Positions 12,968 to 63,998 are shown, counted from the stretch's first letter. The stretch: 64,000 nt of DNA from Obrimoposthia wandeli (GCA_977020255.1 CDROCS010006560.1:1-64000), one strand, 5' to 3'. Notes: a model not told the origin generated them from the letters alone. Numbers and translations: made by a program.

Positions 12968-12989
12968 CTCTAATAACTACATCTACTCG

Positions 12990-13032
12990 CATCTACTCTA
13001 CACATCTACTCTACACATCTACTCTACACATC
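12990..13032. repeat. 13-bp tandem repeat (CATCTACTCTACA x3) between the converging recF and dnaN ends
   Basis: Direct reading. Confidence 0.9.
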
Positions 13033-14073: not shown

Positions 14074-14158
14074 TACTAATTAATTATAAAATCAAATACA
14101 AAATAGGGCTAAATAAAACTCAGTTATCAGCCCCAGTTATCAGTCAAGGCTCACTGGC

Positions 14159-16926: not shown

Positions 16927-17373
16927 ATAATTTTGAATAATTGAACGCTGTCCTTAAGAGCAAAGAATATTGCAGGCTAGGCATTGAAACCATCAGAGCC
17001 CATCCACAGCGGCCATTGGCATCCCCCCATTAAATTCCCAAGTGCCCCATTAAAGCCCCCCCCCCCGCGCCTGGAGTATGGTGACTGGACATTGACTGGA
17101 AATGCATTGACTGGAGGTGGTGGTAACTATGTTGGTAACTATGCCAATTGGTAACTATGTAGCTGGTGGTTTGTAGCTAAGCTTCTGTCGCATGTCTGCT
17201 ACTTTTGCCTGCTTAGAACACCGGACTAACGCCTTGGGCTAACACCTTGGGTATGACTAATACAACCTGACTTACACCCTGACTTACACCCTGACTCTCT
17301 TTATCTTTTCAGGGAATCTTTGTGGATTATTCTTTATGCTAGAATCTAATAAGACAAGGGGTTTTAGTATGTA

Positions 17374-18872
17374 ATGCAGGGTATAGCGCAAGTCAAAACA
17401 GTTGCATTTCACGGAACCAAGGTAAGTGAAATATTGGTACAAGCCACTGTCATACCTGGCATACCATCATTCAACATAGTCGGCCTTCCCGGTAAGAGTA
17501 TTTCAGAGAGTAAATACAGAATTAAATCTGCACTATCTAACTCCGGTATAGGCATGCCTTTTGGGTCAATCGTTATCAACCTCACTCCAGCAAACCTACA
17601 TAAGGAGGGTGGATATTTCGACCTACCAATCGCAATTGCGCTCCTATGTGCAATTGGTTGGATAGAGCATCCTGGGGATACAATAATAGCAGGCGAACTG
17701 AGCCTTGATGGAAGCGTGTTGCCAGTCATGGGCATAATGGCTATGGCACAACATTGCCTCACCAACAACTCAGCATTACTCATGCCCAAGGGTCAGCTCT
17801 GTGCCGTACAATTATTAACAGGCCTGCGGACAATACCCGTAAATCACATCTTGGAAATAGACAACGACAAGCTCACCTCGCCAACGACAATCACCACATC
17901 AAACAACAGCTCGACATCAAGCTCGACACCAACCTCGACACCAACCTTAAGCAGGCAATTCGCAACAATCTTTGGCCAGCTGGATGCAAAACGCGCCATT
18001 CAAATATCTGCTGCTGGTTGGCACAACATCTTAATGGTAGGCCCGCCTGGAGTCGGGAAGACAATGCTAGCACACAGGTTATATCAAACCATGCCCCCTT
18101 TAAGCGCCCAAGACATAATCGAGGTCATCTTATATATTCAATGATGCAACACGTCTCTACCCAAGAACAGTTGGTGCATAATATGCCATTTCGTAACCCA
18201 CACCCCAACTGTACCGTATCCTCCATGGTGGGTGGCGGCTGGAGCGGCTTCATACGACCTGGAGAAATATCATTGGCCAACAAAGGTATCCTCTTTCTGG
18301 ATGAACTACCAGAGTTCCAGTCCAAAGTCATAGAATCCCTTAGGGAACCAATTGAGAATCATAAAATATCAATATCTCGCGCCAGGGCATTTGCAGAATA
18401 TAAATGCGACTTCCTACTTGTAGCAGCCATGAATCCATGTAGGTGCTCAAACATCGGCACACATCAATGCATCAATGCACCCGCATGTGAAATATTATAT
18501 AAAAATAAAATATCAGGACCAATCCTAGACAGAATTGATATACACATAACCGTATCAAACACCATTAGCAATAATGCAGGACCCGACATCGGCCACACAG
18601 TCAAGACAATTGAAACCGCCCACAAGAGGCAGCTCGAACGTCAAAAATGCTATAATTCACGAACAACATTTGACCCATCCTCACTCAGCACAGACGCCAA
18701 TTCCATACTCAGCGCAGCGGTCAAAGGAGGTAGAATTTCCTTTAGGGGTCAAAACAAGATACTCGCCATAGCTCGCACAATAGCGGACATTGAGGATATT
18801 GACACCATTTTGTCAGCCCATATACTCGAGGCCATATCATACAGACCTCACACTCAGATGCGCACAACATAA
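17374..18872 (+). CDS. comM: YifB/ComM Mg-chelatase-like AAA+ helicase (frameshift near 18140)
   Basis: FNIVGLP..SESKYRI, INLTPANLHKEGGYFDLPIA, GELSLDG, HNILMVGPPGVGKT, PFRNPH, PGEISLANKGILFLDELPEF and AAMNPC motifs. Confidence 0.92.
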
Positions 18873-22427: not shown

Positions 22428-24078
22428 CTAGACAATAGACGCCTGTATGAGGAGCTTGGTATATGGGTCCTTTGCCAGTGAGAGGTCGTGCCCCTCAATC
22501 GTTTCGACGATTTTACTATCCTTCATGGCAATTATCCTATTGGACATAGACTGCACAACACCCAAATCATGGCTGATGAAGATATATGTCGTCTTAAGCT
22601 CTCTTTGTATGTCACTAAGAAGTGATAAAATCTGTTTCTGGATATGGGTGTCTAAAGAGGAAGTGGGCTCATCCAAAATAATCACCGTAGGGCGAAATAC
22701 CAGCGCTCTAGCAATTGCAATCCTTTGTCGCTGACCACCAGAAAATTCATGGGGATACTTACTCAAACAATCAATCGGCATCTTGACACTATCAAGGGAA
22801 TCAATCACCATATTATATCTCTCAAGCCTTGAAAGCTCTGGCATATGTACCTTCAAACCTTCTGATATAATATCCCCAGCGGTAAGATGCGGAGGTAGGC
22901 TGCTGTATGGGTTTTGAAATATCAGCTGAACATTTTTACGTATCTTCAACATCTGTTTGTAGGAGTGTTTTGTATACTTCTCACCTTCAAAAATCACATC
23001 ACCTGATGTAATTGGAACAAGCCTGACAAGTGCTCTAGCAAGGGTAGTTTTACCCGAGCCAGACTCACCAACAATCCCCAAAGTTTCACCAGCCTTCACT
23101 GACAGACTCACGCCGCCAAGCGCCTGAAATGATTCCAACGTCTTGCCCATCGCTGTTCTCTTGGTGGGAAAGCAGACAAATAAGTTTTCACAGCTAATAG
23201 CCATAGTCGCATTGGTATCAGTGGATACGGTGCTATTCCCCAAATGTTGCATTGCATCAACAATTTCACACGCACTTGGATGCTGTGGATTGCTTAACAC
23301 GTCATTGGTCTTGCCACCTTCAACAATTACACCATCAGCCATAACATAAATCCTTTGTGAAACATTTTTCACACATACCATGTCATGGGTAATAAATAGG
23401 ATTGCCGTATTAAGCTTGCTCTGAATCCTCTTCAATAGCTCCAATATCTTCAACTGGACTGTAGCGTCCAATGCGGTAGTTGGCTCATCTGCAACAAGCA
23501 TATCGGGCTCGTTAATTAGAGCCATAGCAATCATAACCCTCTGAAGCTGACCACCAGATAGCTCGTGTGGGTAAGCGCCCATCATCTTATCTATACGTGG
23601 CAACTCTTGAATTTCAACTCGCTAACACCTTCTGTTCAGTCCTTTCACGCGCCTGTTTGTGCGTAATGTTCTTATCGTGAATAAACAGCGGCTCCGACAC
23701 CTGTTTAAAAATAGTTTTATATGGATGCATTGCGGACATCGGTTCTTGAAAAATCATAGAAATCCTATTGCCTCGAATAGCACACATCTCGCGCTCAGAT
23801 AGGTCAAGGACATTAACCCCCTGAAAATTTACCTGAGACTTCTTGCTAAATACAGCAGAATCAGATAACAGCCTCATAATAGACAGCCCAGTTGTCGATT
23901 TTCCGGACCCAGACCCGCCAACCAAGGCGACAGTCTCTCCTTTATTAATATGAATATTGACCCCATTAAGGCAGCTGGTGCTCTTGTTAGTCTGAACAAA
24001 ATCAACTCGAAGGTCTTTTATTTCCAAAAGGGTATTGTTTTTTTTAGTGGTATTGAATTGCGTGTCTTTCATCTTCAA
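22428..24078 (-). CDS. Dual-domain peptide ABC transporter ATPase (YejF/DppD-F type), frameshift near 23610
   Basis: Two Walker A motifs (GGSGSGKST, GESGSGKTT), IFQEPM, YPHELSGGQLQR and YPHEFSGGQRQR. Confidence 0.9.
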
Positions 24079-28603: not shown

Positions 28604-30388
28604 CTACAGTGTACCCTTGAGTTCCATGGTGTCATGTATAGTTTTGATTTGATTATACCATGACTTTTTACCTATAGACTTCCCCGACCCCATGATATGC
28701 AAAACGTCACTTGATCTAGTCAGCATAACATACATAAGCCTGTAGTGCTCTTTCATACATCTCTTGCTCAAATACACATCCGTTTTAATACAGTCTGGGG
28801 CAATCACTATAGACGCCTCCATCCCCTTTGCCCCATGCACCGACAGCAACTTCAAACAATCTACATTGTGTACGTTGTTACGAACAACCCCGCTGGGGTT
28901 CGATTGCAAAAATTCTAGCAATGTGTGGCCCTTGTCTATGAGTGAGATAAACTTGTAAATCACAGCGGCGTTGATTTTGTCAAACCCTACAAGCTTATCC
29001 CAATAAGTTGCAATGAGCTCGATATAGAACTCAAATGCACTCATAGTGGGAATGCCTTGGATATACTTCAAGACCCGCTCACCACCATGCTCATTAAGTG
29101 CAACCGCAACTTCGGTGTCGCATAACGGTCCCAGCCTTATGGCGATTTTATAAAACTCATTGTCTGGATATACAGCAAAAATACCAATTGACCTCAAATC
29201 CATCACTACAGATGTATTGTTAATTTCGACTTTTTCATCTGTCACATACTTGATTCCACATGCAAGCAGGCTCCTACAAATAGCTTTGTACAGCACATTC
29301 CTTGTCTGGAACAATATCATTATGTCTTTGTTATTGTCATAGCTCTCAATAACATCCAACACCTGCTTGCACAAAAACTTACCCTGACTACAAGCGGGCC
29401 ATATATCAATGTAACCCTCTAGCGGGCTATTGGTTGAATGCTCAACCCAGTTCGGTGTTACAATACCAACGGTAAAGAGCGTGTTAAGAAGCCTCACAAT
29501 AGCCTTGGGGGACCTGTATGAATGCGGTATTGTGTATTCTCTCCAATGTCCACCACTGGCAACAATGCTACCTTTTAGTATCTCTTTGGATTCTGGCAAA
29601 TATTCAGGAACAGCACCCTGAAATGAGTAAATACTTTGCTTCTTGTCGCCAACAACAAAGCACGTTTTATGGCTCTCGGAAAAACCCTTAACCAAAGTAT
29701 GGATGAGTGCCCATTGCTCCATGTTGGTATCTTGCGATTCATCAACTAGGACATGCTCAAGCTGGTTATCTATCATATCACCAACAGATGAACCCTGTAA
29801 AATAGCATTTGCACTCGTTATAATTTGCGCAAAGGTAAGGATATTCCAGGTCTTCATGACATTAGAGCACGCCTTTTTGACATTAAAAATCAGAGGGTCA
29901 ATCTCTTCCATGCTATTGGCTTCACTAACAAAAGTGCTTTTTAATATACTGAGAATGGATCTGTCCACCTGATAATCATCCATGATGAACATATTCATCA
30001 GCTCTGGATGGGAATCGGCAATCACCTCTTTCACTCGCGCAACAATAAGGCTCTCAAGGCTGGCATCCTCCTCAAAGACAACAAATCCGGGATGTATCCC
30101 TATATCCACTTCGGTGCAATATCTTCTCAGTATACCGTCTGCAAAGGCGTGAATGGTGTTACATTTGACATCCGCTCCGGGGTGCTGATTGTGAACCCTC
30201 TCCAAAATTTCATTGGCTGCATTCTTAGTGTAAGTCAGACAAAGAATCTTCTTAGGCTCCACACCGAGCTCCAATAACTTGGTAACCCTAGCAACCAACA
30301 AGGTCGTCTTACCTGTACCAGCAGACGCCTCAATCCAAATTGAATGCTTACAATCAGTCAGCTGATCAACGCTAAACTTCATATTCAT
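28604..30388 (-). CDS. addA: AddA-like SF1 helicase (helicase core only, no C-terminal nuclease domain)
   Basis: All UvrD motifs are present: ASAGTGKT, LTYTKNAANE, VDESQDT, VGDKKQSIYSFQGA, SYRS, SVHGAKGME and RLMYVMLTR. It lies in tsaE-addB-addA synteny. Start M at 30388. Confidence 0.75.
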   Translation of the reverse strand: MNMKFSVDQLTDCKHSIWIEASAGTGKTTLLVARVTKLLELGVEPKKILCLTYTKNAANEILERVHNQHPGADVKCNTIHAFADGILRRYCTEVDIGIHPGFVVFEEDASLESLIVARVKEVIADSHPELMNMFIMDDYQVDRSILSILKSTFVSEANSMEEIDPLIFNVKKACSNVMKTWNILTFAQIITSANAILQGSSVGDMIDNQLEHVLVDESQDTNMEQWALIHTLVKGFSESHKTCFVVGDKKQSIYSFQGAVPEYLPESKEILKGSIVASGGHWREYTIPHSYRSPKAIVRLLNTLFTVGIVTPNWVEHSTNSPLEGYIDIWPACSQGKFLCKQVLDVIESYDNNKDIMILFQTRNVLYKAICRSLLACGIKYVTDEKVEINNTSVVMDLRSIGIFAVYPDNEFYKIAIRLGPLCDTEVAVALNEHGGERVLKYIQGIPTMSAFEFYIELIATYWDKLVGFDKINAAVIYKFISLIDKGHTLLEFLQSNPSGVVRNNVHNVDCLKLLSVHGAKGMEASIVIAPDCIKTDVYLSKRCMKEHYRLMYVMLTRSSDVLHIMGSGKSIGKKSWYNQIKTIHDTMELKGTL

Positions 30389-32300
30389 AGTGGTACTTCG
30401 TCTCTCGTAAAATAGGCAAAAATGCAGCGGTAATGCTCTTATGTCTCTTTGTGTTGGTATGCCATACCGTAACTTCCTCAGGCGACTCATCATGACAGTA
30501 GGCAATCTCAACTGGAGTAACGGTAATGCTAGGACCATCAACAGAGATTTCATAAATAGCACGCCCCGCTGCCAGCTCGGTGTAGATTGCATGAGCCACG
30601 CTTTGGTCTATATTATAGCTGGACTTCAAAACATACAAATCCCTATCGTTGATAACCCCTACAACAGCTTTGTAAACCATGGCACTATCTACCCTTATAA
30701 AGCACGTCTGATATACCCCCTTCCCCTTCTCAATAATAGCAAGAAGCTCCCTCTTAGCGGACTCAATGTGCGCAGCTCGCATCTTACTATAGAATGCATT
30801 ATTAAACTTAGAGAAGCCCTCCTGAACGTCATACTCCAAACCAAGCGCATGCGCAATTAAAGACTCTTTCATGCATTGGCGATATTGTGACATATCCTGT
30901 CGCCATTGCGAAACGCACTGCCACGGCTTGATGTCTTTGATAAAACGCAAATAATATATCAATCTATCGTTGTGTAAAACCGCAAACTCATATGCACTCA
31001 TAAATCTTGGTAGGGTTATAGTGCGCTCTACTAATAAAGTATTGCTGCGTTTAGGGACTCTAGGGTACTCTATAGCGGCCGGACTTGGGTGCACCGTAAA
31101 GTCAAATATGCTCTCATGTCGGGATATAATACACGTAACATTGTTGTTGTCAAACAAAGACCTCGTCACTGTAACAGAGTTCCTACTGGCAATATCGGTT
31201 AGTATTTCGGCCGTAGAAACGTAACTTGGATGCTGTGAATCCTGCGCAACCTGTGAAATCGCAACTTCACAGTGCACCCCCATAAGGACCGCTGGCGAAG
31301 CATTGAGCCCACCATTGAAGCCTGCCAAGATAACCTTTTGACCCTCTATGCCCGATGCTTGAGTGAGGTTAGATAACACAATCTGTGGCTGTGTGGGATT
31401 CTCGCTCACGCCATCATTTTCATCGAAATCACATTCAAGCGACATAAACGTACTCAACACAGCCTTAGCAAGGTAATGCCGATTGTTGTCTCTAGCTAGG
31501 GTATCTTGATACCTCAATAAGGGGGATGTATCGGGCATCACACCCAGCGCACACGCTATATCATCCACAACTGACAGGCTAAAGCCCCTACCACGATAGC
31601 TATATATAACACTGGTTGCATCCACCCCAGCAAGAAAGCTAACTACCTCGATATCAGATGCCTCCCAGGTGGTAATTGCCTTAATGATTGCCAGAACAGC
31701 CTTGGTAGCAATGTAGCGTGAGCCATGAAGAACGTTCTTATATCCAACCTCGCAGCATTGCAGCCGAGCATACTTGGCATGCAAAATAATGGCATCTTTG
31801 AGCTCCTGATTGGATGTGATGCAAAACACGCGCTTATCTTCGCAGGCAAGCTCGCAGGCAAGCTCGCGGGCAAGCCCCACAATTGCAAGCGCTTCCTGAT
31901 GCACGGAATCGAATGCGAAATAATCCGCGCTATAGGGTGGCCCTTGCTGGCATTCAAAGCTGGACTTGCATATATAATTGTCAATTGCAGCATGAATGGC
32001 AGACTGCTTGGGGTTGGTGTAATTGTGAGTTATATTCACCGCATCGTATGAGTGAACTATGCTCTCCAAAATGACATTAAAATACTCCGCATTCACCCTA
32101 GCTACGCTCCTATTGTACCCAAGGTAACTCAGGTCACCATCCATACAAAAAGCCTTGAAAATCATCTCTTGCATATCATCAATAGTGAGAGATATGCAAT
32201 CAGTTATGAGGGACTCAACACTGGTTATGCCATCTAGGTTGCTCAGTTGATTGTGGCCTGCATACATATGCATGCTCAGTTGGTTTGCAAAGAGTCTCAT
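30372..32300 (-). CDS. Highly divergent AddB-like protein
   Basis: Located between tsaE and addA. LPRFMSAYEF..L.NDRLIYYLRFI..IKP recalls the AddB P..LS.T.I..L..DPY..Y...IL.L.P motif. Confidence 0.5.
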   Translation of the reverse strand: MRLFANQLSMHMYAGHNQLSNLDGITSVESLITDCISLTIDDMQEMIFKAFCMDGDLSYLGYNRSVARVNAEYFNVILESIVHSYDAVNITHNYTNPKQSAIHAAIDNYICKSSFECQQGPPYSADYFAFDSVHQEALAIVGLARELACELACEDKRVFCITSNQELKDAIILHAKYARLQCCEVGYKNVLHGSRYIATKAVLAIIKAITTWEASDIEVVSFLAGVDATSVIYSYRGRGFSLSVVDDIACALGVMPDTSPLLRYQDTLARDNNRHYLAKAVLSTFMSLECDFDENDGVSENPTQPQIVLSNLTQASGIEGQKVILAGFNGGLNASPAVLMGVHCEVAISQVAQDSQHPSYVSTAEILTDIASRNSVTVTRSLFDNNNVTCIISRHESIFDFTVHPSPAAIEYPRVPKRSNTLLVERTITLPRFMSAYEFAVLHNDRLIYYLRFIKDIKPWQCVSQWRQDMSQYRQCMKESLIAHALGLEYDVQEGFSKFNNAFYSKMRAAHIESAKRELLAIIEKGKGVYQTCFIRVDSAMVYKAVVGVINDRDLYVLKSSYNIDQSVAHAIYTELAAGRAIYEISVDGPSITVTPVEIAYCHDESPEEVTVWHTNTKRHKSITAAFLPILRETKYHYEYEV

Positions 32301-32933: not shown

Positions 32934-34371
32934 TCACTCATTCGCTATAGTGGTATTATGCATATACCAAAAAGCATAACAATCCGACGGCAACACTGAC
33001 AATTCAATACAGTTACCCATTTGATTGTTGTGTAATAACATGACACAACCTAACCCACCAAACTCCCAAACATTGTCGTTAATTTCAACATGCACCTTGT
33101 TAGAGCTGTGGCGTATTATATTCGCATCTGGAGCAAGGTAGAACCGAAAATATATATAATTGGATACCTTGGCAACTGCCATATCCTTCCCAAAAATACC
33201 CCTTGGTGTAACAATGATGTCACGCATGTGGCGCATATTATACCTCCGACTGTGAGACTTGAATCGCACAATCTCAGCGCCGCTCTCAAGCGCGGCTTTG
33301 GACATCTCAGACTCACGGTCCCATGCTTGGCTCACCTGAATTGTGGAATGATGCTCTACATCCAAGCCAATGCGATTCACAATAATAGGCACCCCCTTGT
33401 GATAGTATTCAAAGCTAGCAATAGCAGGGTTATCACCATAGCTATGACATAAACATAGCACGCTCTCACCGGACCTAGCCTTGACAATGTTACCTAAGGT
33501 AGAGTTGTTAACGTTTGAAATATTTGCAATAATTGCTTTGATATTCTGGATTTCTTTCTTGTGCTCGGGCAACAGGGCTTCCAAATCCCTATCAGAGCCA
33601 AACCTGGCAACGTTACGTCCACAAATAATCTTAGACGCCGTCATCGAGAAAAAATCAATAGCACTAACAAAGAGCGCGTTATCTTTAATTTGCACCACAT
33701 CAAGAAGCACCCTCAACACCAAAAACGCAGTAATAGAAGAAATATTCTTTAACGCTAACAGCTCCTTTAACGTCAGATGTTAATTGAGAAAGCGCTATAT
33801 CCTGCAATTGCCTCACTGGCCTTTGTTGGTCCAACCCAGAAAGTGCCACTATCACACTCCTAGCAACTATCAACTTGTCATCATAAGAGAGAAGGGGACA
33901 TACAGTATTCAGGTATCTTGCATGTAAAATAAAATGACCTATAATGAGTGACTTGAAGTCGTTGCTAGCAGACGCAAAGAACACATCATAGTACATAGCC
34001 CAAAAGTACAACCTATTAGCAGCCACCTCTGGACTCCAAGACAGCGAGCCGAACCTCACTTGCTGTGTTATCCATGTATTGGTAATATTGCGAACATGGT
34101 CAATCACCTCTTGGTTGATAATGTTAGCACCCATCTTGTACGCCATATCTCGCAAAAAGCTAAAATCATGTCGATAATGCTTAAGCGCCTCCTCAGCGCC
34201 CATGGACATAATGCGTTCAAAGTTATAAAAACTAGGCGGTATTGGATCATGTACGCCATAGCGCACATCAAATGTCATCCTATAGGCTACATCTCTGATA
34301 CGTTCAATCTTTGGCACTCTATTGAATATACCCAAATAACGTTTTAAAAATCTAAACATCCTAACTAACAT
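32934..34371 (-). CDS. Heparinase II/III-like conserved alphaproteobacterial protein (split near 33710)
   Basis: W..EVAANRLYFW, SFEYYHKG..IIVN and FYLAPD motifs. Its position next to rpe matches the recalled alphaproteobacterial synteny. Confidence 0.55.
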
Positions 34372-46960: not shown

Positions 46961-49029
46961 CTAACTCTCCGCTTGCTGACTTTGACTTACTGACTTTGAG
47001 TATATCGGCAAAGACCCCTGAGGCCGTCACATCCGCACCAGCGCCCGCACCCTTTAATAATCAGCGGCTGCTCTTTATAGCGGTTGGTATAAAACATGAC
47101 TATATTATCCTTCCCTTCAATGTTGTAAAAATGATGCTCTGGACCCACCTCCTCAAGCTTGACTCGCGCCTTGCCATCCTTAAAAGAGGCTATATGCTTG
47201 AGCTTGCACCCCTTGTGAGACGCAGATGACAATAACCCTTGAAAATGGCTATCCTCTTGATTTAATATCTCCAAAAACTCATCAATTGAACCTGAAGACA
47301 TGGCCTTTTCAGGTAAGAATCCATGATTAACGATATCATCCAACTCCATCTCAACACCCGATTCACGCGCCAAAATCAGGATTTTACGCATTACATCAAC
47401 GCAGCTCAGGTCAATACGCGGATCAGGTTCTGTATATTTCTTCCTTCCATGGCACGTTTAACAACATCAATAAACGAGTCCCAGAAACAAAATTATTAAA
47501 GATAAAATTGAGACTCCCAGACAGCACGGCCTGAATCTCAATAATAGAATCACCCGATGCAATCAGGTCAGACAAGGTGCTAATTATAGGGAGGCCAGCG
47601 CCTACATTGGTTTCAAATAAAAAACTGACATCACGCTCCTTAGCGATGTTCTTGAGCTCATTATACACCGCAAACTCTGATGAGCATGTTATCTTATTGC
47701 ATGCCACAATTGAAATGCCACCTTTAAGAAACTCTATGTACTGAGCTGCAACCTCATGGCTTGCTGTGTTGTCCACCATGACACTGTTAGGCATATTCAA
47801 GCTCTTAACCTTATCCAAAAAGCCCCTTAAGTTCGCATTACCCCCGCTTGCAATCACATCATCCAAATTATTGATATTGATGCCAGCCTTGCGTGCAAAT
47901 GCCATTTTCGAAGTGTTCATAACACCCATAATACGAATATTTAAATTATGGGATTCAGCAAACGCTCAGACTGTGCGCTAATCTGCTCAATAAGCTTGCG
48001 ACCCACGTTCCCAATACCAATCACAAACAAATTCACCTGCCTCTCGGGGGCCTCAAAGCATGGCTCAACCCCTAAGCTGCAAGCCGTAACATCACGCACA
48101 ATGACAGCACCCAAAGAGCTGATATCAAAGATATTCTTGATGTTAATTCTAATATCTTTGGACTCTAAAAGCTGAATCGTACAACGTTTAATGAGCAACG
48201 TATCGATGTTTGAAAGCTTCATAGCTTCTGTGTACGACATTTCCTTAATCGGGGTTGCCTTAGGGGTTGCCTTAGGGGTTGCCTTAGGGGCTAAGTTAGG
48301 GTCGGCATTATATACCACATCGATATCACTCCAGATATCAAAGGAGTCCGCGTTCAGGATGTTTCCAATCACTGCCCCAACGTAATCAGCACACCCTATT
48401 CTGTCTGGCACCCTTGAGGATGCATCTGGGGATATATTTAGGGATATAGAATTCTCGTAATTGAGCCCTGGAACAGATCCAGTTATAATCAATACACTCT
48501 TAGTAGCTTGAAGCTGGATATTGATATTTGATGCTGTAAGGTCGAAGTCAACCTGGGACGTTAAAGAGTCAATTGCAACAATGTCGCTAGCATCCTTGAA
48601 TAGAGCCTCAACGCCTTGACAGCGCAAAACCTCAATCATAATACTTGCACAAATTCGCTCACTGTCAGCAAAGGCACAATCATATACACCTAGAGGTGTC
48701 TCCTGTATGGTGTATAAAGCCTCTGCAAGCGACTCCAGTTTATTAATTGCCTCTTGCAGTATACACAACAGATGCTGCTGTTTATCGTGTGGCAAAAGCG
48801 CCAAAATTAGTTCGGTATAATATAATTGTAGCTTCTGAATATTCTCCTTATACAGTAGCTTCTCTCTCTTGCTGGCTTGCTCACCAATATTCAACACCGC
48901 ATCCAACGTGTCACCAAATGCAGACATCATAACCACAACGCCAGCGCTGGCGGATTTTACAACACTAGCTGCATTCAATATAGCATCTGTTGACTTTAAG
49001 GCCGTCTCTCGAAATCTTAATACCCTCAT
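46953..49029 (-). CDS. thrA: Aspartokinase/homoserine dehydrogenase fusion with a degenerate AK domain and no ACT domains (3 frameshifts)
   Basis: HSDH motifs GIGNVG, VDNTAS, ACNK, FETNVGAGLP, LSGSLNFIF, RKILILARE and GAGAGADVTASGVFAD. The AK domain is recognisable but altered. The stop overlaps the thrB start (ATGATTAA). Confidence 0.9.
48251..48290. repeat. 12-bp in-frame tandem repeat (KATP x3) inside thrA
   Basis: GGGGTTGCCTTA x3. Confidence 0.9.
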
Positions 49030-50545: not shown

Positions 50546-51079
50546 ATGAGTATAACAAGCCCTATAACAGACGCAATTCAAACACAGCAGGCAATAGCAA
50601 TGTGGATGATAGACAACACAAGTTTAACCTTTAAACAGATAGCAACCTTTTGTTCTTTGCATGAAATCACTATACGCGCAATTGCAGACCTTGAAATCAA
50701 CACAACGAAAATAGATCCAGTAGTAAACGACCTCGTCACTCAAGAAGAGATTACCAGGTGCCAAAATGACCCAGATGTCATGCTGCAACCCAGTAGAGTG
50801 GTACACCTACCATCAAAAAGAAAGCACGCATCGGCCAAAGACAGGCACAACAAGCCAAATGCAATAGCGTGGATAATCAAACAACACCCACATATCGATG
50901 ATACGAGCATTGCAAAGCTGTTAAAAACGACACAGGTCAATGTGCACTCCATCAGGAACAAAACCCACAGAAACTACAGCGAAATTGTGCCAGTTGACCC
51001 ATGCGAAATCGGTATCACCACAGAGGAAGATTTGATGAAGATGGTACACAAATGCGGCGGCATCTTTAATGAAGGGTAA
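50546..51079 (+). CDS. DUF1013 alphaproteobacterial conserved protein (TrcR-like)
   Basis: AMWMIDNTSLTFKQIATFCSLH, DPV...VTQEEI.RC, KPNAIAWI and IRNKTH.N...I.P.DP motifs. Confidence 0.88.
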   Translation: MSITSPITDAIQTQQAIAMWMIDNTSLTFKQIATFCSLHEITIRAIADLEINTTKIDPVVNDLVTQEEITRCQNDPDVMLQPSRVVHLPSKRKHASAKDRHNKPNAIAWIIKQHPHIDDTSIAKLLKTTQVNVHSIRNKTHRNYSEIVPVDPCEIGITTEEDLMKMVHKCGGIFNEG

Positions 51080-52391
51080 GCTTAATCAAGGGCAAGCTTA
51101 ATGAAGGGTGAACTAATGAAAGGTAAACCCACCTATGCATTATTCCAGCACCCAGCAACTTCAATTGACCTCAGCGCTATCCCAAACACTAACCCAAACA
51201 CTAACCCAAAGGGCTATCCCAACACTATAATTTAGCGCACCCTTGGCGGTAAAACCTTGGGCGGTAACCTAAAAGCCACACCTGTAAAGCGATTTTTATT
51301 TTTTTTTATTTTATTTTTTTTTCAGTAACTCGATTTAAAAGTTCTTGCTCACAACAAAAATAAAAACCTTTTTCAGAGGGTTGGCAGAATTTTCTGGCCT
51401 TGCTTCTCGTTTTGAAACTTGGTAGGTTGCCTTCCCGCTCCTTTTTTCTTGCGGTAAAAAGCGTGTTGGGAATTTTCCTTTTGACTTTGAATTTCAAGAG
51501 TTTTAGGAAATTCTCTATTCTCTCCTCTCTGCTCTTTGTTTCTTTCCACCCACTTGGTAGTTTAGGGCGGCTCTATAGCGCTCATGATCGCACGTGGAAG
51601 CCTCTGCCCCCCTTGCGTGGAAAAAATTTACCTGCCTTCTTTTGGCTTTAAAATCGATAGCGTTCTTCTTTGAATCTTTGAGCCTGATTTCACCCTAATT
51701 TCTGAACATTTGAGAAGAAAAACAAGGTTGGATTTTAGACCTTGAGTTCAGCATTGAAAATTCAAGATTTGAACTTTCCCCCTTCAACCAAACTTGGCAG
51801 GATAGGTGAAAAGGGTTCCTTTTTAAAAATCAGCTTGAATTCGCTGTTTTCGACTTTTTTCCACTGTTAAAAAATAAGCTTCATCCCTTTTGTCAAAAGG
51901 GGGTATCCTGCCTCTCGTAAAAGTGGTTAAAAATTTTTGTAAAAGTTGAGATTGTATTTTGGAGAAATTTGCTTTTCAACATAAGGAAAATATGCTCATT
52001 CACATGATAAACTCTCAAATTGTATGTGGGCAGCATATTTGTCGACCTTGAGTCGTCTAGCGTGTCGACCTTGAGTCGTCTCGCGCCTCTGTAAATTTCT
52101 AGTTACATGACGTTTTATAGCGTTAGTTTAGCTTGAGATATACCTACTGATGATTGGAAAATCCAGACTAGAAAGATTCTTTTTTCCTGATAGTTTATGG
52201 ATTCTCCGTCCTTCCAAGTCAGATATAATATATCACGTTGCATAAATGCTTCAAAATAGTTAACACGGCAGGCCGCACCACAGATTGCATCATACCTTCG
52301 CTGCTCAACGTGAAGGAGCTGCATATCCATCCAACAGACAATTGAATCTATTGATATGTAACATCATATAAATAAATTACGGGAAAATCGC

Positions 52392-52420
52392 TTGACTTAC
52401 CAATCTCCCAGCATTAATAT
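52392..52420 (+). promoter_or_regulatory. sigma70-type promoter of the cassette (also at 54290-54318 and 56193-56221)
   Basis: TTGACT-17-TAATAT, identical in all 3 copies. It is preceded by the inverted repeat ATATG-N6-CATAT; RBS AAAGGAG in copy 3. Confidence 0.65.
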
Positions 52421-52531
52421 AGTTGATAAGTGAAACTATGTACCAAGTGGGTTTTAAATTTGGGTTTTAAGTTGATTTTTTTAATTAATTATAATATCTT
52501 AAAGGTATAGCAGGCTAAAAGGAATAATTTT

Positions 52532-53004
52532 ATAGGAAAATTAAACAAATTATTAATGAGATTAATGTTGTGTACGTTTGCAGTGTCTTCACTATCGTTT
52601 GTCAATGCAGAAACAACAAAAGGAACAACTCACTCAAGTAACGTGGACGCGTTCTTGGCGAGTTCTTATGTCATGAACGATGAGGAGCTTAGCGAATTTG
52701 AAGGCGAGGACACACAGACAGAGATTATAGTGGTAGCACTCGCAACAGCCGCAAGACAGATTCCGCCTGTTAGGATCGCGGTTGCGGCTGATCGAGTCTA
52801 TAATGCCGCTAGTGAGGCTTGCGGATCATACAGAAGATCAAAGAGAGGCTGGCAACGGGTGTGTGGAAATCTACTGTTGAAGCTACGAGAGCGTTGGACG
52901 ATGACTCTGCGGAAGTCCTGGCCCTGGGGGCTGCTGGAGGAGCTGGGGGGAGAAAACTGAATAAAGGGATGGAAGAAGACACTACGAACCACGCGAAGAG
53001 CTAA
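52532..53004 (+). pseudogene. Secreted bacteriocin-like precursor, copy 1 (first ATG altered to ATA; frameshift near 52830)
   Basis: Paralog of 54450..54917. Confidence 0.55.
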
Positions 53005-53044
53005 AAAGCCAAGGTGCTAGCTACAAGTTTATTGCTTAGTTATA

Positions 53045-53566
53045 ATGAAAAAAGAACTAGAGCTTTTGTATAGAAAAAACAAGATAATAGAAATGAAAGT
53101 TCGAACAATAATTTCGGGGCTAGCAGCCAAACTTACAGTATTTAAAAGGTATTTCATTGCCCACAATGACGTTTTTATTGTATATTTTTATAAACGCTGT
53201 ACTTAAGACCTTCTTGCAAGGCGCCCTTAGCATACAAGATACTAGCATGCGTGAAGCTGGCGTCTGGCTTGTCCTCGGAGAAGCGTCCTCGTGCTTGGCC
53301 TCCGGCTTTGCGCCTCGGCACTTGTTGCTGTTATCGTACTCGTAAATCAACTCCGGCCTGGTTTTATCCAGTGGTAGTACGTATATTAAAAGGCATATGT
53401 AAAATGATCACAGCATGTTTTTTATCCTTCGCGCTTCTAGCCTGCGCTGCCTCGTTGTACGATCTTGTTAGGTATGGCATATTCAGCGGATTTATTGCGC
53501 GAGCACCTTTGTGGCTTGTATTGTCTTAGTATTGGTGTAATAGGTGTAATAATTTTTGATGAATAA
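53045..53566 (+). pseudogene. Multi-TM partner protein, copy 1 (frameshifts; TGG to TAG at 53527)
   Basis: Paralog of 56847..57368. Confidence 0.55.
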
Positions 53567-53821
53567 GTTGATTGGTCGGTAGCAACTTTTTGTGATGCTA
53601 GTCTGCTGACACGCATACGATCCACATAAAATCAATTTAACGAATTTCAAGCCTTGTTCGATGTACTTGTAGGTAATTCACAAATCTCTTTTGTAGCAAT
53701 TTCGGATCATGAACAGCAACACTATAGTCGATCGTCCTACAGCAAAGGATTTTTCTGAACAGTTAGTGTTGACGCTCTCCGATCTGAAGCATCAATAGTG
53801 CAACATAGGTGGGGGTATATA

Positions 53822-53848
53822 TAACATATGGCTGTCTGCCATATGTTA
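53822..53848. other. Perfect 11-bp inverted repeat TAACATATGGC-TGTCT-GCCATATGTTA (8-bp core conserved in copies 2 and 3)
   Basis: Direct reading. It lies near the end of each unit; terminator or element-end role unknown. Confidence 0.6.
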
Positions 53849-54449
53849 CACTGCTGATTTCACCATATTTCAGGCCGGAGATGGCTTTAAGTCATTCACG
53901 CGATAGACTTACCTTATGTATGTGGGCAGCATATTTGTAAATCGACCTTGAATCCGTTACAGGACTTCCTTGAGTCGTCTCGCGCCTCTGTAAATTTCTA
54001 GTTACATGACGTTTTATAGCGATTGGTTTAAGCGAGATATACCTACTGTAGATTGGAAAATCCAAGCCAGGAAGATTTTTTTTTCTGATAGTTTATGGAT
54101 TTTCCGTCCTTCAGGTCGAATTATAATATATCACGTTGCATAAATGCTTCAAAATAGTTAACACGGCAGGCCGCACCACAGATTGCATCATACCTTCGCT
54201 GCTCAACGTGAAGGAACTGCATATCCATCCAACAGACAATTGAATCTATTGATATGTAACATCATATAAATAAATTAGGAAAAAATCGCTTGACTTACCA
54301 ATCTCCCAGCATTAATATAGTTAATGGGTGAAACTATGTACCAAATTGGGTTTAAATTTTGGGTTTAAAGTTGATTTTTATTAATTATAACTATCCTTAA
54401 AGGTACTATCTTAAAAGGTAATATAGCAGGCTAAAAGAGAGTAATACTT

Positions 54450-54917
54450 ATGAGAAAATTAAACAAATTATTAATGGGTTTAATGTTGTGTACATTCGCA
54501 GTGTTTTCACTATCGTTTGTCAATGCAGAAACAACAAAAGGAGCTACTCACTCAAGTAACCTAGACGAGTTCTTGGCAAGCTCTTATGTCATGAATGATA
54601 CAGAGCTTGGTGCATTTGAAGGCGAGGGCGGCGGTAAAGAAGCTGCATTGGCAGCCTTAGCAGCCGCAAGACAAATTCCGCCTGTTAGGATCGCGGTTGC
54701 GGCTGATCGAGTCTATAATGCCGCTAGTGAGGCTTGCGGATCATACAGAAGATCAAGAGAGGCTGGCAACAGTGTGTGGAAATCTACTGTTGAAGCTACG
54801 AAAGGCGTTGGACGTGGTCTCGCGAGTCCTGGCCCTGGGGAGAGACTGCTGGAGAGACTGGGGGAGAAACTGAATAAAGGGATGGAAGAAGACACTACGA
54901 ACCACGCGAAGAGCTAA
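54450..54917 (+). CDS. Secreted bacteriocin/toxin-like precursor, copy 2 (intact, 155 aa)
   Basis: Sec-type signal MRKLNKLLMGLMLCTFAVFSLSFVNA, pro-region ending MNDTELGAFEGE, then an Ala/Gly-rich amphipathic core. Confidence 0.7.
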   Translation: MRKLNKLLMGLMLCTFAVFSLSFVNAETTKGATHSSNLDEFLASSYVMNDTELGAFEGEGGGKEAALAALAAARQIPPVRIAVAADRVYNAASEACGSYRRSREAGNSVWKSTVEATKGVGRGLASPGPGERLLERLGEKLNKGMEEDTTNHAKS

Positions 54918-54951
54918 AAAGCCAAGGTGCTAGCTAAAGTTTGTAGTTATA

Positions 54952-55467
54952 ATGAAAAAGAACTGAAGCTTTTGTATAGAAAAAACAAGATAATAGAAAT
55001 GAAAAAAGTTCAGACAATAATTTCGGGGCTAGCAGCCAAGCTTACAGTATTTAAGGTATTTCATTGCCTTACAATGACGTTTTTTGTGTATATTTTTATA
55101 AGCGCTGTACTTAAGACCTTCTTGCAAGGCACTTATAGCATACAAGATACTAGCATGCGTGCGCTTGTCGTCTGGCTTGTCCTCGGGCTTGTCCTCGTGC
55201 TTGGCTTCCTGCTTTGCGCCTCGGCACTTGTTGCTGCTATCGTACTCTGCGTCAACTCAAGGCGCTAGGTTTTATCCAGTGGTAGTACGTATATTAAAAG
55301 GCATATGTAAAATGATCTGTATGTTTTTTATCCCTTTAGCGCTTCTAGCCTGCGCTGTCGCGTTGTACGATCTTGTTAGGTATGGCATATTCGGATTTAT
55401 TGCAGTACCGTTGTGGCTTGCATTGTCATGGTATTGGTGTAATAGGTGTAATAATTTTGATGAATAA
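54952..55467 (+). CDS. Multi-TM partner (immunity-like), copy 2 (one frameshift near 55250)
   Basis: ORFs 54927..55268 and 55159..55467 together equal the copy 3 protein. Confidence 0.6.
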
Positions 55468-56335
55468 GGATTGATTGGTCGGTAGCAACTTTTTTGTGAT
55501 GCTAGTCTGCTGACACGCATACGATCCACATAAAAAATCAATTTAATTTCAAGCCTTGTTCGATGTACTTGTAGGTAATTCACAAATCTCTTTTGTAGCA
55601 ATTTCGGATCATGAACAGCAACACTATAGTCGATCGTCCTACAGCAAAGGATTTTTCTGAACAGTTAGTGTTGACGCTCTCCGATCTGAAGCATCAATAG
55701 TGCAACATAGGTGGGGGTATGGTTAACATATGGCTGTCTGCCATATGGTTATACTACTGATTTCACCATATTTCAGGCCGGAGATGGCTTTAAGTCATTC
55801 ACATGATAGACTCTCAAATTGTATGTGGGCAGCATATTTGTAATTCGTCCCTTGAGTCCGTTACAGGGCTTTATTGAGGCGTTTAGCGCCTCTGTAAATT
55901 TCTAGTTACATGACGTTTGTATAGCGTTAATTAGCTTGAGATATACTTACTGATGATTGGAGAGTCCAGCTAGAAAGATTATTTTTTCCTGATAGTTTAT
56001 GGATTCTCCGTCCTTCAGGTCGAATTATAATATATCACGTTGCATAAATGCTTCAAAATAGTTGACACGGCAGCTGCACCGCAGGTTACATCATACCTTT
56101 GCTGCTCAACGTGAAGGAACTGCATATCCATCCAAGAGACAATTGAATCTATTGATATGTAACATCATATAAATAAATTACGGGAAAATCGCTTGACTTA
56201 CCAATCTCCCAGCATTAATATAGTTATTAGTGAAACTATGTACCAAATTGGGTTTAAATTTTGGGTTTAAGTTGATTTTTTAATTAATTATAACTATCTT
56301 AAGGTATATAGCTTGAGCTAAAAGGAGTAATACTT

Positions 56336-56806
56336 ATGAGAAAATTAAACAAATTATTAATGGGTTTAATGTTGTGTACGTTTGCAGTGTCTTCACTATC
56401 GTTTGTCAATGCAGAAACAACAAAGGAACAACTCACCCCTCATAACGTGGACGCGTTCTTGGCGAGTTCTTTATGTCATGAACGATGAGGAGCTTAGCGA
56501 ATTTTGAAGGCGAGGGCACAAAGACAGAGATTATAGTGGGAGCACTCGCAACAGCCGCAAAGGATTCCGACTGTTATGATCGCTGGTGCCGTTGATCGAG
56601 GCTGTAATGCCGCTAGTGAGGCTTGCGGATCATACAGAAGATCAAGAGAGGCTGGCAACAGTGTGTGGAAATCTACTGTTGAAGCTACGAAAGGCGTTGG
56701 ACGTGGTCTCGCGAGTCCTGGCCCTGGGGAGAGACTGCTGGAGAGACTGGGGGAGAAACTGAATAAAGTGATGGAAGAAGACACTACGAACCACGCGAAG
56801 AGCTAA
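56336..56806 (+). CDS. Secreted precursor, copy 3 (several indels)
   Basis: ATG at 56336 after AAAGGAG; paralog of copy 2. Confidence 0.6.
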
Positions 56807-56846
56807 AAAGCCAAGGTGCTAGCTACAAGTTTATTGCTTAGTTATA

Positions 56847-57368
56847 ATGAAAAAAGAACTAGAGCTTTTGTATAGAAAAAACAAGATAATAGAAATGAAA
56901 AAAGTTCAGACAATAATTTCGGGGCTAGCACCCAAGCTTACAGTATTTAAGGTACTTTATTGCCTTGCAATGACGTTTTCTACGTCTATTTTTATAAGCG
57001 CTGTACTTAAGACCTTCTTGCAAGGCACTTATATCATACAAGATACTAGCATGCGTGAGCTTGGCGTCTGGCTTGTCCTCGGGCTTGTCCTCGTGCTTGG
57101 CCTCCGGCTTTGCGCCTCGGCACTTGTTGCTGTTACTATCGTACTCGTAAATCAACTCAAGGCCTTTAGGTTTTATCCAGTGGTAGTACGTATATTAAAA
57201 GGCATATGTAAAATGATCTGTATGTTTTTTATCCCTTTAGCGCTTCTAGCCTGCGCTGCCTCGTTGTACGATCTTGTTAGGTATGGCATATTCGGATTTA
57301 TTGCAGCACCTTTGTGGCTTGTATTGTCTTGGTATTGGTGTAATAGGTGTAATAATTTTGATGAATAA
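56847..57368 (+). CDS. Multi-TM partner (immunity-like), copy 3 (intact, 173 aa)
   Basis: Basic N-terminus and about 4 hydrophobic segments; starts 40 bp after the precursor stop. Confidence 0.7.
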   Translation: MKKELELLYRKNKIIEMKKVQTIISGLAPKLTVFKVLYCLAMTFSTSIFISAVLKTFLQGTYIIQDTSMRELGVWLVLGLVLVLGLRLCASALVAVTIVLVNQLKAFRFYPVVVRILKGICKMICMFFIPLALLACAASLYDLVRYGIFGFIAAPLWLVLSWYWCNRCNNFDE

Positions 57369-58246
57369 GGATTGATTGGTCGGTAGCAACTTTTTTGTGA
57401 TGCTAGTCTGCTGACACGCATACGATCCACATAAAATCAATTTAACGAATTTCAAGCCTTGTTCGATGTCCTTGTAGGTAATTCACAAATCTCTTTTGTA
57501 GCAATTTCGGATCATGAACAGCAACACTATAGTCGATCGTCCTACAGCAAAGGATTTTTCTGAACAGTTAGTGTTGACGCTCTCCGATCTGAAGCATCAA
57601 TAGTGCAACATAGGTGGGGGTATGGTTAACATATGGCTGTCTGCCATATGGTTATACTACTGATTTCACCATATTTCAGGCCGGAGATGGCTTTAAGTCA
57701 TTCACATGATAGACTTACCTTAAATTGTATGTGGGCAGCATATTTGTAAATCGACCTTGAATCCGTTACAGGACTTCCTTGAGTCGTCTCGCGCCTCTGT
57801 AAATTTCTAGTTACATGACGTTTTATAGCGTTAGTTTAGCTTGAGATATACCTACTGATGATTCGAGAGTCAAAGCTAGAAAGGTTATTTTTTCCTGATA
57901 GTTTTATGGATTCTCCGTCCTTCAGGTCGGAGAGGATGTCAACTGAGCTGGAGCTAGTGAACATTTTGGCTCATTGATCTACCATCCCCAAAAGCTAGCC
58001 ACAAACCCTGGAAGCCCTTTGGAGGCCCCTTGGAAGCCCTTGAATCAATGTTTATCAACGCTTATCGGTGTTTATATGGCTAAAATCCCCACGACAATCC
58101 CTACGAGTAATACTTAAAAACTTAATGTGACAATAAGGAATTAATCAAGGGACTAATCCGTATCTGTATGACTAACAGTGGGTGTGGGAAATATTATCGG
58201 ATACTAAATACAGGAAAGCAAATGCATGAAAGCAAATGCAGGAAAG

Positions 58247-58320
58247 CGCGCCCGGGAGGATTCGAACCCCCAACCTCTTGATCCGTAGTCAAACACTCTG
58301 TCCAGTTGAGCTACGGGCGC
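58247..58320 (-). tRNA. tRNA-Arg (ACG)
   Basis: Cloverleaf GCGCCCG..TTTGA-CTACGGA-TCAAG..GGGGG-TTCGAAT-CCTCC-CGGGCGC. Confidence 0.95.
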
Positions 58321-61013: not shown

Positions 61014-62477
61014 GCGCTTTTCCTGGGCAATTGCCTTGAGAACCTCACCAACGTCTTTAGGGTTGGCTTTGCCACGCGTGGCCTTCATTGCCTGCCCTAC
61101 AAACCATGAGACAATCTTGGCTTCACCATTGAGGTACTTTGCAACCTCTTCCTCGCTCTTCTCCCAAACCTCCATCAATGAGGCGCGCAAAAGCTCTTTG
61201 GAGTCAGACGCAATCTCATTGTCTGCAAGGGCGCTCTTTAATCGCATTCCATATTACAGCTCTTTCTCTTTATCTTCTACAATCTTGACAATGATATTTT
61301 GGATGTAACATTTGTAATTTTCTCACTATAGAGCCACCATGCAATTTCCTTCAGGAGCTCACCGGGAATGTCGTTACCCATGCGCGCGCCGGCATATGTA
61401 TTAACAATAAAATTGGCCCAAAACACAATTGCTCCTGCATCACAAAAGTGCTGCAAGGCACCCTCAAAAGGCGCAGCCTCGCTCAAATGCACCGTAGCTG
61501 CAGTGGCCTAATCTAACCAAGCGTGACATACCTCCCCATAATCTCCCAAAGGCGGGGATTTCTTGCCTTATCTTGTCAATAGCCTCCTGCTTAACAGTAA
61601 CAATGGGCATGTCCATCTCAGGAAAGTAACAGTAATCTTCAACGGTCTCTTTGATTCGCATGAACTTTGTAGACTTGGTCTTGGCGTCAAATAGTCTGGT
61701 GTGCTTGACAATTGTGTCACCCCCCGCTATATGTTCAACCTGTCTCTTGAATTCATACTCCAGCGCCACTTTAATGAACCCAGGTGAGTTGATATTCTTA
61801 ATCTCCACTGGTATCTGAGGGTCGCTATCATCCCTAAAGACAGAGACATTCACGTCGCACCTAATTGAACCGTTCTCCATGCTTCCGTCACACACATCCA
61901 GTGCCATCAATATGGCTCGTACAAACCTAACATATTCCACCGCTTCATCGGATGAAGATATGTCTGGCATGCTCACAATCTCCATGAGCCCAACCCCGCT
62001 CCTGTTAAAGTCAATTGAGGAACCGCTGTTATCATGAATCAGTTTGGCCGCATCTTGCTCAAGGTGCATCTTAATCAATCCAACCCTCTTACCGCTTGTA
62101 AGCGTAACGTGGCCACCTAGAGCAATAGGGAAAAAATTCTGTGTAATTTGGTATCCTGACGGCAGGTCGGGATATTTATAGTGCTTCCTGTCAAAGCTAA
62201 TGTTCTGGTTAATTGTACAATTCAGGGCTAAGCCAGCCTTAATGCCCATGTAAACACACTGCGGATTTAGTACTGGGAGTGCGCCTGGCATGCCAATGTC
62301 CATAATGTCTACATTGGTATTCGGTAACGCGTTACAATTGGGTGCGAACGATAAAATTTTATTCGCAGACCTAATTTGGGAATGCATCTCAATGCCTACT
62401 TTCATATACCATGTTTCACCTAGGTGTAACATACTTTGGGTGCTTTGGGTGCCCGTGCCATGTGTGCCCTGGGTCAT
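61011..62477 (-). CDS. gatB: Glu/Asp-tRNA amidotransferase subunit B (frameshifts in the C-terminal third)
   Basis: VGIEMH, FDRKHY.YPDLPSGYQITQ, HLEQDA, DFNRSGVGLMEIVS, GSMENGSIRCDVNVS, YCYFPE and WFVGQAMKATRGKANP motifs. Confidence 0.95.
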
Positions 62478-63998
62478 GATTTTATTCCCTGACTACTGCG
62501 ATTTTCGTTTGTTAGTCCAAGTGCAACACTTGAATCTATTACCTTATCCAGTGCTGCTGCAATCTTATGTTTTACCTGATAGTCAGACTCAAGCGCTCCT
62601 TGGGCATGAAGTGCAAAATCAAACATTTTGTCATCACATTTTGGCTTTGCCATGACATGGAGAGACTGCGGAATATTGTCAACAATGCCAGAGGGTATGC
62701 TAATAGCCGGTGCGTACACATGCGCCGCCAATGTAAGGTAAAGGTCCAATGAGGAATACAGACTTTGATTCGTGACTCCGGAATTAACATCAAGCGGAAT
62801 ACCTCCACTGCTCACAACACTAGGATTAACCACAAAGTCAAACTCACTCCAGACCTTGTCAAAAAACTTCACCATTTCAAGCCTTATTGCCGAGGCTTTG
62901 TTATATACATGCCTCCCGTGCTCCGACATGAAGTATGCACCAATAGTGATTCTAGATTGAACAACGTCTCCAAGGCTTTGAGTCCTGTAATCCATCATAT
63001 TCTCAATATAATCATGTTTATCAAAGCACATCTCGTTCTTGTATCGCACATGGTCATATCTGGCAAGGTTGGATGCAGCCTCTGTAAAGGTGAGCACCTT
63101 GTACAAATGACTCATGATGCCAATGTATTTACATTCAATCTGCTGGATTTGGCAATACGGCTCTAAGGATGAAATCACACGACTCATGTTCTCTTGACAA
63201 ATCTCATCTTCCTCAATGCATCTAATCAATGCAATTTTAGGCCTGTAATCCAGTGCATTACATCCCTTATCTGGCCATACTAGCATCATGCATGGTAACA
63301 AAGTCACGAGGGTCGTGTCCAACAATCTTGCTGGCAACTGTGCGTGTACCCTGTACATCAAGCGCCATCACCCCAACCTGGTCATATGATGAAGCATATG
63401 ATATCACCCCAAAGCGTGAAATATAACCATAGCTTGGACGGTACCCAACAATGCCGTTAACAGATGCTGGAAGCCTAATAGAGCCACCCGTATCAGACCC
63501 TAACGCAGCAATACACATACCAGCCACAACAGCAACCGCAGACCCAGATGACGAACCCCCTGGTGAATATTTCACGTTTTTGAATTTTGAATTTGCAAAT
63601 GGTGTCGTGGTCGCGCCAAAGATACTACTGCTACCATCAAAGCCCATACAAAACTGGTCGCAGTTGGCTTTCCCAATAACGGTTACACCGCTATCAACCA
63701 AAGACCGCGCTACGGTTGCATCGTACTCAGGCACGAACTCTTTCAAGACAGTAGAAGCTGTGGTAGTGGGGCCAAAGCATATATTGTCTTTTAACACCAT
63801 GGGGAGGCCTGCTAGCGCGGTATTGGTATTGGTATTGGTATTGGTATTGGTGTCGGTAAATGTTCTAATAAGCGCATTAAAGGCTTGGTATTTCCTTGTG
63901 TTGGCAAAGCACTGACTAATGATGCCACGCTTATCTTGAGCCTTAATAAATTGGGACACTGTTATGTGCCTGGGGTTTTGCATGTCTGGGTTTTGCAT
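62474..63998 (-). CDS. gatA: Glu-tRNA amidotransferase subunit A (frameshift near 63330)
   Basis: KDNIC, GKANCDQFCMG, PGGSSSGSA, GSDTGGSIRLPA, RPSYG.ISRFG, SNLARYD and PAISIPSG motifs. Confidence 0.95.
63819..63851. repeat. 6-bp in-frame repeat (GGTATT x5; NT x5) inside gatA
   Basis: Direct reading. Confidence 0.88.

Follow-up and report, generated by a model that had tools for sequence, protein, structure and literature searches.

Among described bacterial systems, class II bacteriocins and microcins have mature peptides of under ~10 kDa that are cationic and/or hydrophobic-amphiphilic, and classical conversion-cassette systems have one expression site, the donors being promoterless. Considered here against that background is a head-to-tail tandem array of 3.1 units of ~1.9 kb, at 51996-57929 on the plus strand of a 64,000-nucleotide (nt) stretch of DNA from Obrimoposthia wandeli (GCA_977020255.1, CDROCS010006560.1:1-64000), the whole of which is termed 'the window' below. 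Each full unit has a promoter-like site followed by two genes, or what is left of them: gene A, for a predicted exported protein, and gene B, for a predicted membrane protein with four helices. A first interpretation, made by inspection of the sequence alone (the sequence-only reading), had seen in the array a candidate toxin/immunity system of diversified cassettes. We now think it probable, though well short of assured, that what was tandemly amplified was a lineage-specific two-gene envelope operon, and that it is now eroding in a generally decaying genome. Tandem arrays of lineage-specific genes that erode in a reductive genome are a familiar kind of object; both protein families are new to the databases searched.

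The units were delimited by whole-length alignment with MAFFT (Table 1), and repeat families within the array are spaced 1896-1906 nt apart. With unit 3 as blastn query, the window yields four places in the array, at 90.8%, 90.6%, 100% and 90.2% identity, and no further copies elsewhere in its 64 kb; inter-unit identity is ~90-91%. Within each unit the order is promoter-like site, then gene A and then, after a spacer of 34-40 nt, gene B, with the ~870 nt between gene B and the next gene A being without a conserved open reading frame (ORF). The promoter-like site, TTGACT-N17-TAATAT, is identical and at equal offset in all three full units, and its core and the signal-peptide region of A are among the least variable columns of the unit. 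The best Shine-Dalgarno-like sequence, AAGGAG, precedes the start of gene A in unit 3. On layout the sequence-only reading was sound: the three tandem units of ~1.9 kb that it described are there, together with the start of a fourth, as are the amplification of the locus, an identical sigma70-like promoter in every full unit, near constancy of the promoter and signal regions, and a short gap between the genes, which it had put at 35-40 bp.

Its account of the genes held in part. Every unit had been credited with an exported precursor of 155 amino acids (aa) and a 173-aa partner with about four transmembrane (TM) segments. The signal-like segment of the one and the four hydrophobic segments of the other are indeed present, but an intact A survives only in unit 2 and an intact B only in unit 3, so that no unit keeps an intact pair and the working cognate pairs that had been envisaged are not to be found. 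The remaining four of the six gene copies all have a broken frame that runs into premature stops. In gene A of unit 1 the start codon was lost by a substitution, and what remains is a shorter ORF that opens at an internal start and whose C-terminal part is out of frame. Blocks of insertion or deletion (indels) whose length is not a multiple of three number 9 of 10 in gene A, 7 of 12 in gene B and 16 of 17 in the upstream non-coding DNA, i.e. 16 of the 22 coding blocks break the frame. No single switch tract of the sort that phase variation would use was found, each broken copy having 3-5 frame-disrupting indels.

Diversification by selection, also part of the sequence-only reading, finds no backing in how the copies differ. 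Pairwise divergence is 10-13% for gene A, 5-10% for gene B, 11-13% for the upstream non-coding DNA and 2-3% for the 330 nt downstream of B; coding divergence, at 5-13% overall, is not above that of the non-coding DNA upstream. Variable columns are spread evenly over the three codon positions (23/28/30 in A and 21/23/17 in B, p about 0.6). The ratio of nonsynonymous to synonymous change (dN/dS, Nei-Gojobori) is 0.47-1.02 when calculated on the 60-123 codons per pair whose frame the two copies share, and the combination expected of a diversifying array, dN/dS above 1 with the frames kept, was not seen in these comparisons. These figures point to relaxed constraint and, most visibly in B, to a measure of purifying selection in the past; diversifying selection is not indicated.

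How then did the 'blocks' of difference between the copies arise? The 321 sites at which one unit is the odd one out fall into only 79 runs, a degree of clustering matched by none of 5000 permutations, and the closest pair of units alternates along the unit from 2-3 to 1-3 to 1-2. Mosaics of this kind are left by gene conversion or other recombination among the units, which is the probable source of the blocks. The blocks themselves had been correctly perceived, but not their supposedly in-frame character, four copies having frame-disrupting indels. Short 12-nt in-frame repeats within both genes add length variation. Gene A has ~3 tandem copies of such a repeat, at 54838-54872 and again at 56727-56761; gene B has 3-5, at 55163-55214 and 57059-57120, where they give the second membrane helix of the protein a recurring hydrophobic motif of four residues.

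The part of the unit that is best conserved is neither gene. It is the ~330-nt segment downstream of B, which is 97-98% identical between units and contains a near-perfect palindrome with a stem of ~11 bp. No conserved ORF or Rfam match was found in this segment and its fold signal is weak, with z-scores of -1.97 and -1.23; nor does the 870-nt non-coding part as a whole yield a third gene or RNA, as judged by conserved ORFs, Pfam and Rfam matches and folding. The sameness of the downstream segment may reflect recent conversion or function. On the minus strand of unit 1, at 52118-52363, 82 stop-free codons run from immediately upstream of the promoter away from gene A; the equivalent stretch has 46 codons in unit 2 and is broken in unit 3. 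With no family match, it may be a remnant of a divergent small gene.

What can be said of the two proteins? Hydropathy and inspection give A a hydrophobic core (residues 6-26) preceded by a basic n-region, and a VNA|E site with cleavage predicted after residue 26; a Sec-type N-terminal signal would thus be present, one of the two kinds of leader (double-glycine or Sec) of class II bacteriocins. The mature protein of 129 aa would be of 13.5 kDa, with an isoelectric point (pI) of 5.75, a grand average of hydropathy (GRAVY) of -0.53, one cysteine and no amphipathic or hydrophobic stretch. Its AlphaFold model is all-helical and, with a mean predicted local distance difference test (pLDDT) score of 43, unreliable and too poor for a structure search. 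Variability peaks in the N-terminal part of mature A, the signal peptide and the C-terminus being constant. B has four regularly spaced hydrophobic segments and, by the positive-inside rule, is predicted to have both ends inside, with nine lysine or arginine residues in the N-terminal 35 and four more in the second inside loop; the AlphaFold model has four long helices (pLDDT 71). On the codon usage of the housekeeping genes of the window, the intact frames of A and B are each the best of six, at 0.08 and 0.025 bits per codon respectively, with the housekeeping genes scoring above both at 0.12-0.27. Since the frames are best on codon usage and the signal and TM features are well formed, A and B are taken to be real, or recently real, genes, for a predicted exported protein and a predicted inner-membrane protein.

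The sequence-only reading recognised neither family, and neither do the databases. No match to A or B was obtained in Pfam, NCBIfam, PADLOC, PHROGs or the sequences of the PDB, and a word-seeded HMMER search with both against 5.8 billion protein clusters came back empty. An exhaustive HMMER scan of 1.84 billion representatives with B revealed no true relative, and Foldseek found no PDB neighbour of the B model below E = 0.5. The single B match from the exhaustive scan (P0001) is spurious, a weak score that adds up across ten repeats of 58 aa in an acidic protein. Nothing matched B in the GTDB species genomes, A or a 27-mer from the conserved 3' segment in the JGI metagenomes, A and B in plasmids and phages (tblastn) or in IMG/VR, or the whole unit in plasmids (blastn). 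The proteins represent two families new to the databases searched.

The genome around the array is, on sequence grounds, that of a divergent Rhodospirillales-like alphaproteobacterium, the closest proteins to its FabB being 57-62% identical and from marine Rhodospirillales (among them Minwuia, Rhodovibrionaceae and Kiloniellaceae). Exact-match queries with FabI, FabB, TrcR and B retrieved no record from the assembly collection. Many of its housekeeping genes are in disrepair. gatA, comM and an ATP-binding cassette (ABC) ATPase gene are each split into two ORFs, and four more, gatB, dnaN, hom (homoserine dehydrogenase) and the gene of a class II aminoacyl-tRNA synthetase, have short ORFs and are probably truncated, a judgement from ORF length and profile span for which start-codon choice may account. 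ORFs of at least 150 aa span only 66% of the window. These features suggest a genome in active reductive decay, and probably a host-restricted one.

Put together, a plausible history is as follows. A would be exported by Sec and cleaved after VNA to give a 13.5-kDa hydrophilic protein, periplasmic or secreted; B would sit in the inner membrane as four helices with both ends cytoplasmic; and the two would act jointly at the cell envelope. Unequal recombination between units would have built the array, and gene conversion between them would have kept the promoters and 3' segments alike while generating the blocks of difference elsewhere. Selection on the copies having relaxed, the redundant ones would now be disappearing. 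No more than a single A and a single B could still be produced, and from different units.

Several points pull the other way. In some pairs dN/dS is near 0.5, and the frame is kept by 5 of 12 indels in B, compared with 1 of 17 in the non-coding stretch upstream, which together imply purifying selection during part of the history. The promoter and the 330-nt downstream segment out-conserve the genes, as could result from selection on expression beyond the effect of conversion alone. There may have been local positive selection in the N-terminal part of mature A, where codon counts are small. Export and topology were called from simple rules of hydropathy and from a model built on one sequence, and the exhaustive HMMER scan was run for B only. 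Might the system still work? It may, since one intact A and one intact B remain, with a good promoter.

Of the alternatives to an eroding envelope operon, the one that fares best, though we consider it unlikely, is a host-interface module: A would be secreted or surface-exposed, B its membrane partner, and the tandem copies a store from which segmental gene conversion would vary the exposed protein. The strong mosaic signature of inter-unit conversion, concentration of variability in the N-terminal part of mature A between constant ends, the 12-nt in-frame repeats of both genes, and gene decay of a type typical of host restriction are all in keeping with it. However, there is a promoter in every unit in place of the single expression site and promoterless donors of the classical systems, only three donors are present, there are multiple breaks per gene, and dN/dS is not above 1.

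Rather unlikely, in our estimation, is the bacteriocin-like array originally proposed, in which A would be a Sec-exported antibacterial, B would protect the producer, and variant cassettes, orphan immunity genes among them, would accumulate as they do in competition loci. The tandem layout under one promoter, a signal-bearing small protein and then a small multi-TM protein, is that of such a system; B fits an immunity gene in position and size (a 34-40 nt spacer, 173 aa, four TM segments), although no unit has both genes intact. Unit 3, with an intact B and no intact A, resembles an orphan immunity gene, and absence of homologues fits fast-evolving antagonism genes. In unit 2, though, the intact A adjoins a broken cognate B. 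The likeness to class II bacteriocin/immunity pairs was well founded for the two-gene layout and fails for the product: at 13.5 kDa, with a pI of 5.75 and a GRAVY of -0.53, mature A is too large, acidic and hydrophilic, and lacks an amphipathic or hydrophobic stretch. Neither A nor B matches a family of bacteriocins or immunity proteins in Pfam or NCBIfam, or anything in PADLOC; dN/dS is not above 1, with codon positions equally affected; the variation extends over non-coding DNA; and competition loci tend to be lost from decaying, probably host-restricted genomes such as this one. We judge a role at the envelope or host interface more probable than a toxin/immunity array that is active and diversifying.

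A broader proposal, which we regard as improbable, is of a novel module of secreted protein and membrane partner, antagonistic or host-directed, whose variants are reshuffled by conversion among promoter-bearing tandem cassettes with the active A and B coming from different units. Were the array such an active antagonism or host-interface module, two new protein families would be added to those known, and it would follow that a system of this sort can persist and multiply within a genome that is otherwise decaying.

Could the breaks lie in the data rather than the DNA, with three intact pairs being hidden by indel errors of sequencing or assembly? Many housekeeping genes of the window likewise appear split, as they would from an error-prone assembly, and 4 of the 16 frame-disrupting blocks of the two genes are in homopolymer runs of at least 4. 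Yet most of these blocks are outside homopolymers, the loss of the start codon in unit 1 is a substitution, and gyrB, fabB and the PDH E2 gene have long, uninterrupted frames. Two of the housekeeping break regions were examined and are without a homopolymer, which favours real decay over sequencing error, and we hold the artefact to be quite improbable. As for the array being a repeated non-coding element with two long ORFs by chance, the lack of homologues and of a third-position substitution excess and the superior conservation of the non-coding 3' part would suit it. Against it, the two ORFs share a strand and follow a promoter-like site in the order to be expected; each is the best of six frames on the codon usage of the genome; A has a clean signal-peptide architecture, and B has four regular hydrophobic helices obeying the positive-inside rule as well as an excess of in-frame indels over non-coding DNA. 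We take chance ORFs to be highly improbable.

Table 1. Positions in the window of the array, its parts and neighbouring or related features (frame-disrupting and in-frame indels are counted relative to the intact copy of the same gene)
Feature	Position	Strand	Remarks
ORF-poor stretch	51080-51995		between trcR and array; short tandem repeats
Full unit 1	51996-53891	+	1896 nt
Promoter-like site, unit 1	52392-52420	+	~130 nt upstream of gene A; consensus scan
Gene A, unit 1	52532-53004	+	broken: homologous start codon lost, 5 frame-disrupting indels
Gene B, unit 1	53045-53566	+	broken: 5 frame-disrupting and 4 in-frame indels, premature stops
Conserved non-coding segment 3' of gene B, unit 1	53567-53891	+	~330 nt
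Full unit 2	53892-55794	+	1903 nt
Promoter-like site, unit 2	54290-54318	+	consensus scan
Gene A, unit 2	54450-54917	+	sole intact A, 155 aa; ORF list
Gene B, unit 2	54952-55467	+	broken: 3 frame-disrupting indels and 1 in-frame indel; two ORF pieces
Conserved non-coding segment 3' of gene B, unit 2	55468-55794	+	~330 nt
Full unit 3	55795-57700	+	1906 nt
Promoter-like site, unit 3	56193-56221	+	consensus scan
Gene A, unit 3	56336-56806	+	broken: 3 frame-disrupting indels, early stop
Gene B, unit 3	56847-57368	+	sole intact B, 173 aa, pI 9.5, 7 cysteines
Conserved non-coding segment 3' of gene B, unit 3	57369-57700	+	~330 nt
Truncated unit 4	57701-57929	+	first ~229 nt of unit; stops short of promoter
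tRNA-Arg(ACG) gene	58246-58320	-	316 nt right of array; ARAGORN and Rfam
Broken or truncated housekeeping genes	61464-63998 (-), 17374-18872 (+), 22428-24078 (-), 13059-13805 (-), 47423-47929 (-), 4097-4822 (-)		

To the left of the array are the PPDK regulatory kinase gene, trcR and then the ~900-nt ORF-poor stretch, in which no gene remnant is recognisable; beyond the tRNA gene to its right fabI, fabB, fabA, gatB and gatA lie on the other strand. No exporter, peptidase or modifying enzyme is encoded within ~10 kb, where the neighbours are housekeeping genes, and here too the sequence-only reading, which had noted the lack of an adjacent exporter or modifying enzyme, was correct; the more distant ABC genes of the window are of the zinc-uptake and Lol/FtsX types. 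On both sides the array is flanked by ORF-poor DNA with clustered short tandem repeats, their periods being 10-16 nt (51066-51322 and 58009-58247), and there is a T-rich run in the left flank at 51293-51322. GC skew is negative throughout the window except over the array.

Proximity to a tRNA gene invites the thought of an island. A tRNA-linked origin of the array is possible and unsupported, there being no integrase remnant, no att-like repeat of at least 10 nt of the tRNA at its far left side, and a guanine-plus-cytosine (GC) content only slightly below that of the flanks. Non-coding GC in the window is ~40%, as compared with ~25% in Candidatus Endolissoclinum faulkneri (PMC3851785), a difference on which that species was rejected as the source. 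The nearest genomes share with the window only fabA-fabB-fabI, and are therefore uninformative on whether the array is an insertion.

A few further features of the window merit mention. dnaA, the probably truncated dnaN and gyrB are clustered at 9595-15592 (-), and since they are together a replication-origin region is probably within the window. A 195-aa ORF at 1264-1851 (-) matches only the middle of the profile of a phage head-to-tail connector of portal type (PF12236, E 3.5e-19, positions 238-330 of 489) and looks like a remnant of a prophage or gene-transfer agent. Between a short CoaE-like ORF (16408-16926) and comM is a run of eleven C residues (17056-17066), unique in the window where 0.03 would be expected by chance. 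At 30372-32300 (-) a 642-aa ORF, which overlaps an addA-like ORF at the start of the latter, is without a match in either Pfam or NCBIfam, and at 32934-34371 (-) are ORFs of 262 and 223 aa with no Pfam match.

As the evidence stands, the array is chiefly an example of the way in which a lineage-specific amplified operon erodes: redundant copies break, the regulatory ends stay alike through conversion, and a working A and a working B may persist in different units. There is also a lesson for those of us who read sequence by eye, namely that what is judged to be an array of variant 'cassettes' can prove to be a set of pseudogenes.

With Sec-dependent class II bacteriocins and microcins the array shares a small signal-bearing precursor and a multi-TM gene within 40 nt in one transcription unit, and no dedicated exporter would be required if Sec is used; it differs in that mature A is of 129 aa, acidic and hydrophilic, in lacking a family match and in having no intact pair in any unit. 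Arrays of orphan toxin/immunity cassettes in polymorphic-toxin loci, of the contact-dependent inhibition (CDI) and Rhs systems, are similar in having adjacent tandem variant cassettes, some truncated or orphaned. Here, however, a large delivery protein is missing, as is a design of constant N-terminus and variable C-terminus, the C-terminus of A being among its most constant parts, and each unit has a promoter with no sign of positive selection. The mosaic blocks of difference, consistent with conversion, recall the segmental-conversion cassettes of host-associated bacteria, such as msp2/p44 of Anaplasma and vls of Borrelia, from which the array departs in having a promoter on all copies, only three copies, several frame breaks in most of them, and unrelated proteins. 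The tandemly duplicated lineage-specific genes and variable-copy tandem repeats of reduced genomes such as that of Ehrlichia ruminantium (Collins et al. 2005, cited in PMC3851785) differ in that the genes here are without relatives and the organism is Rhodospirillales-like and not of the Rickettsiales; they are alike in being kb-scale, head-to-tail and in a decaying, probably host-restricted genome. As with tandem duplications in reduced alphaproteobacterial genomes, the copies here have been homogenised in some parts and eroded in others.

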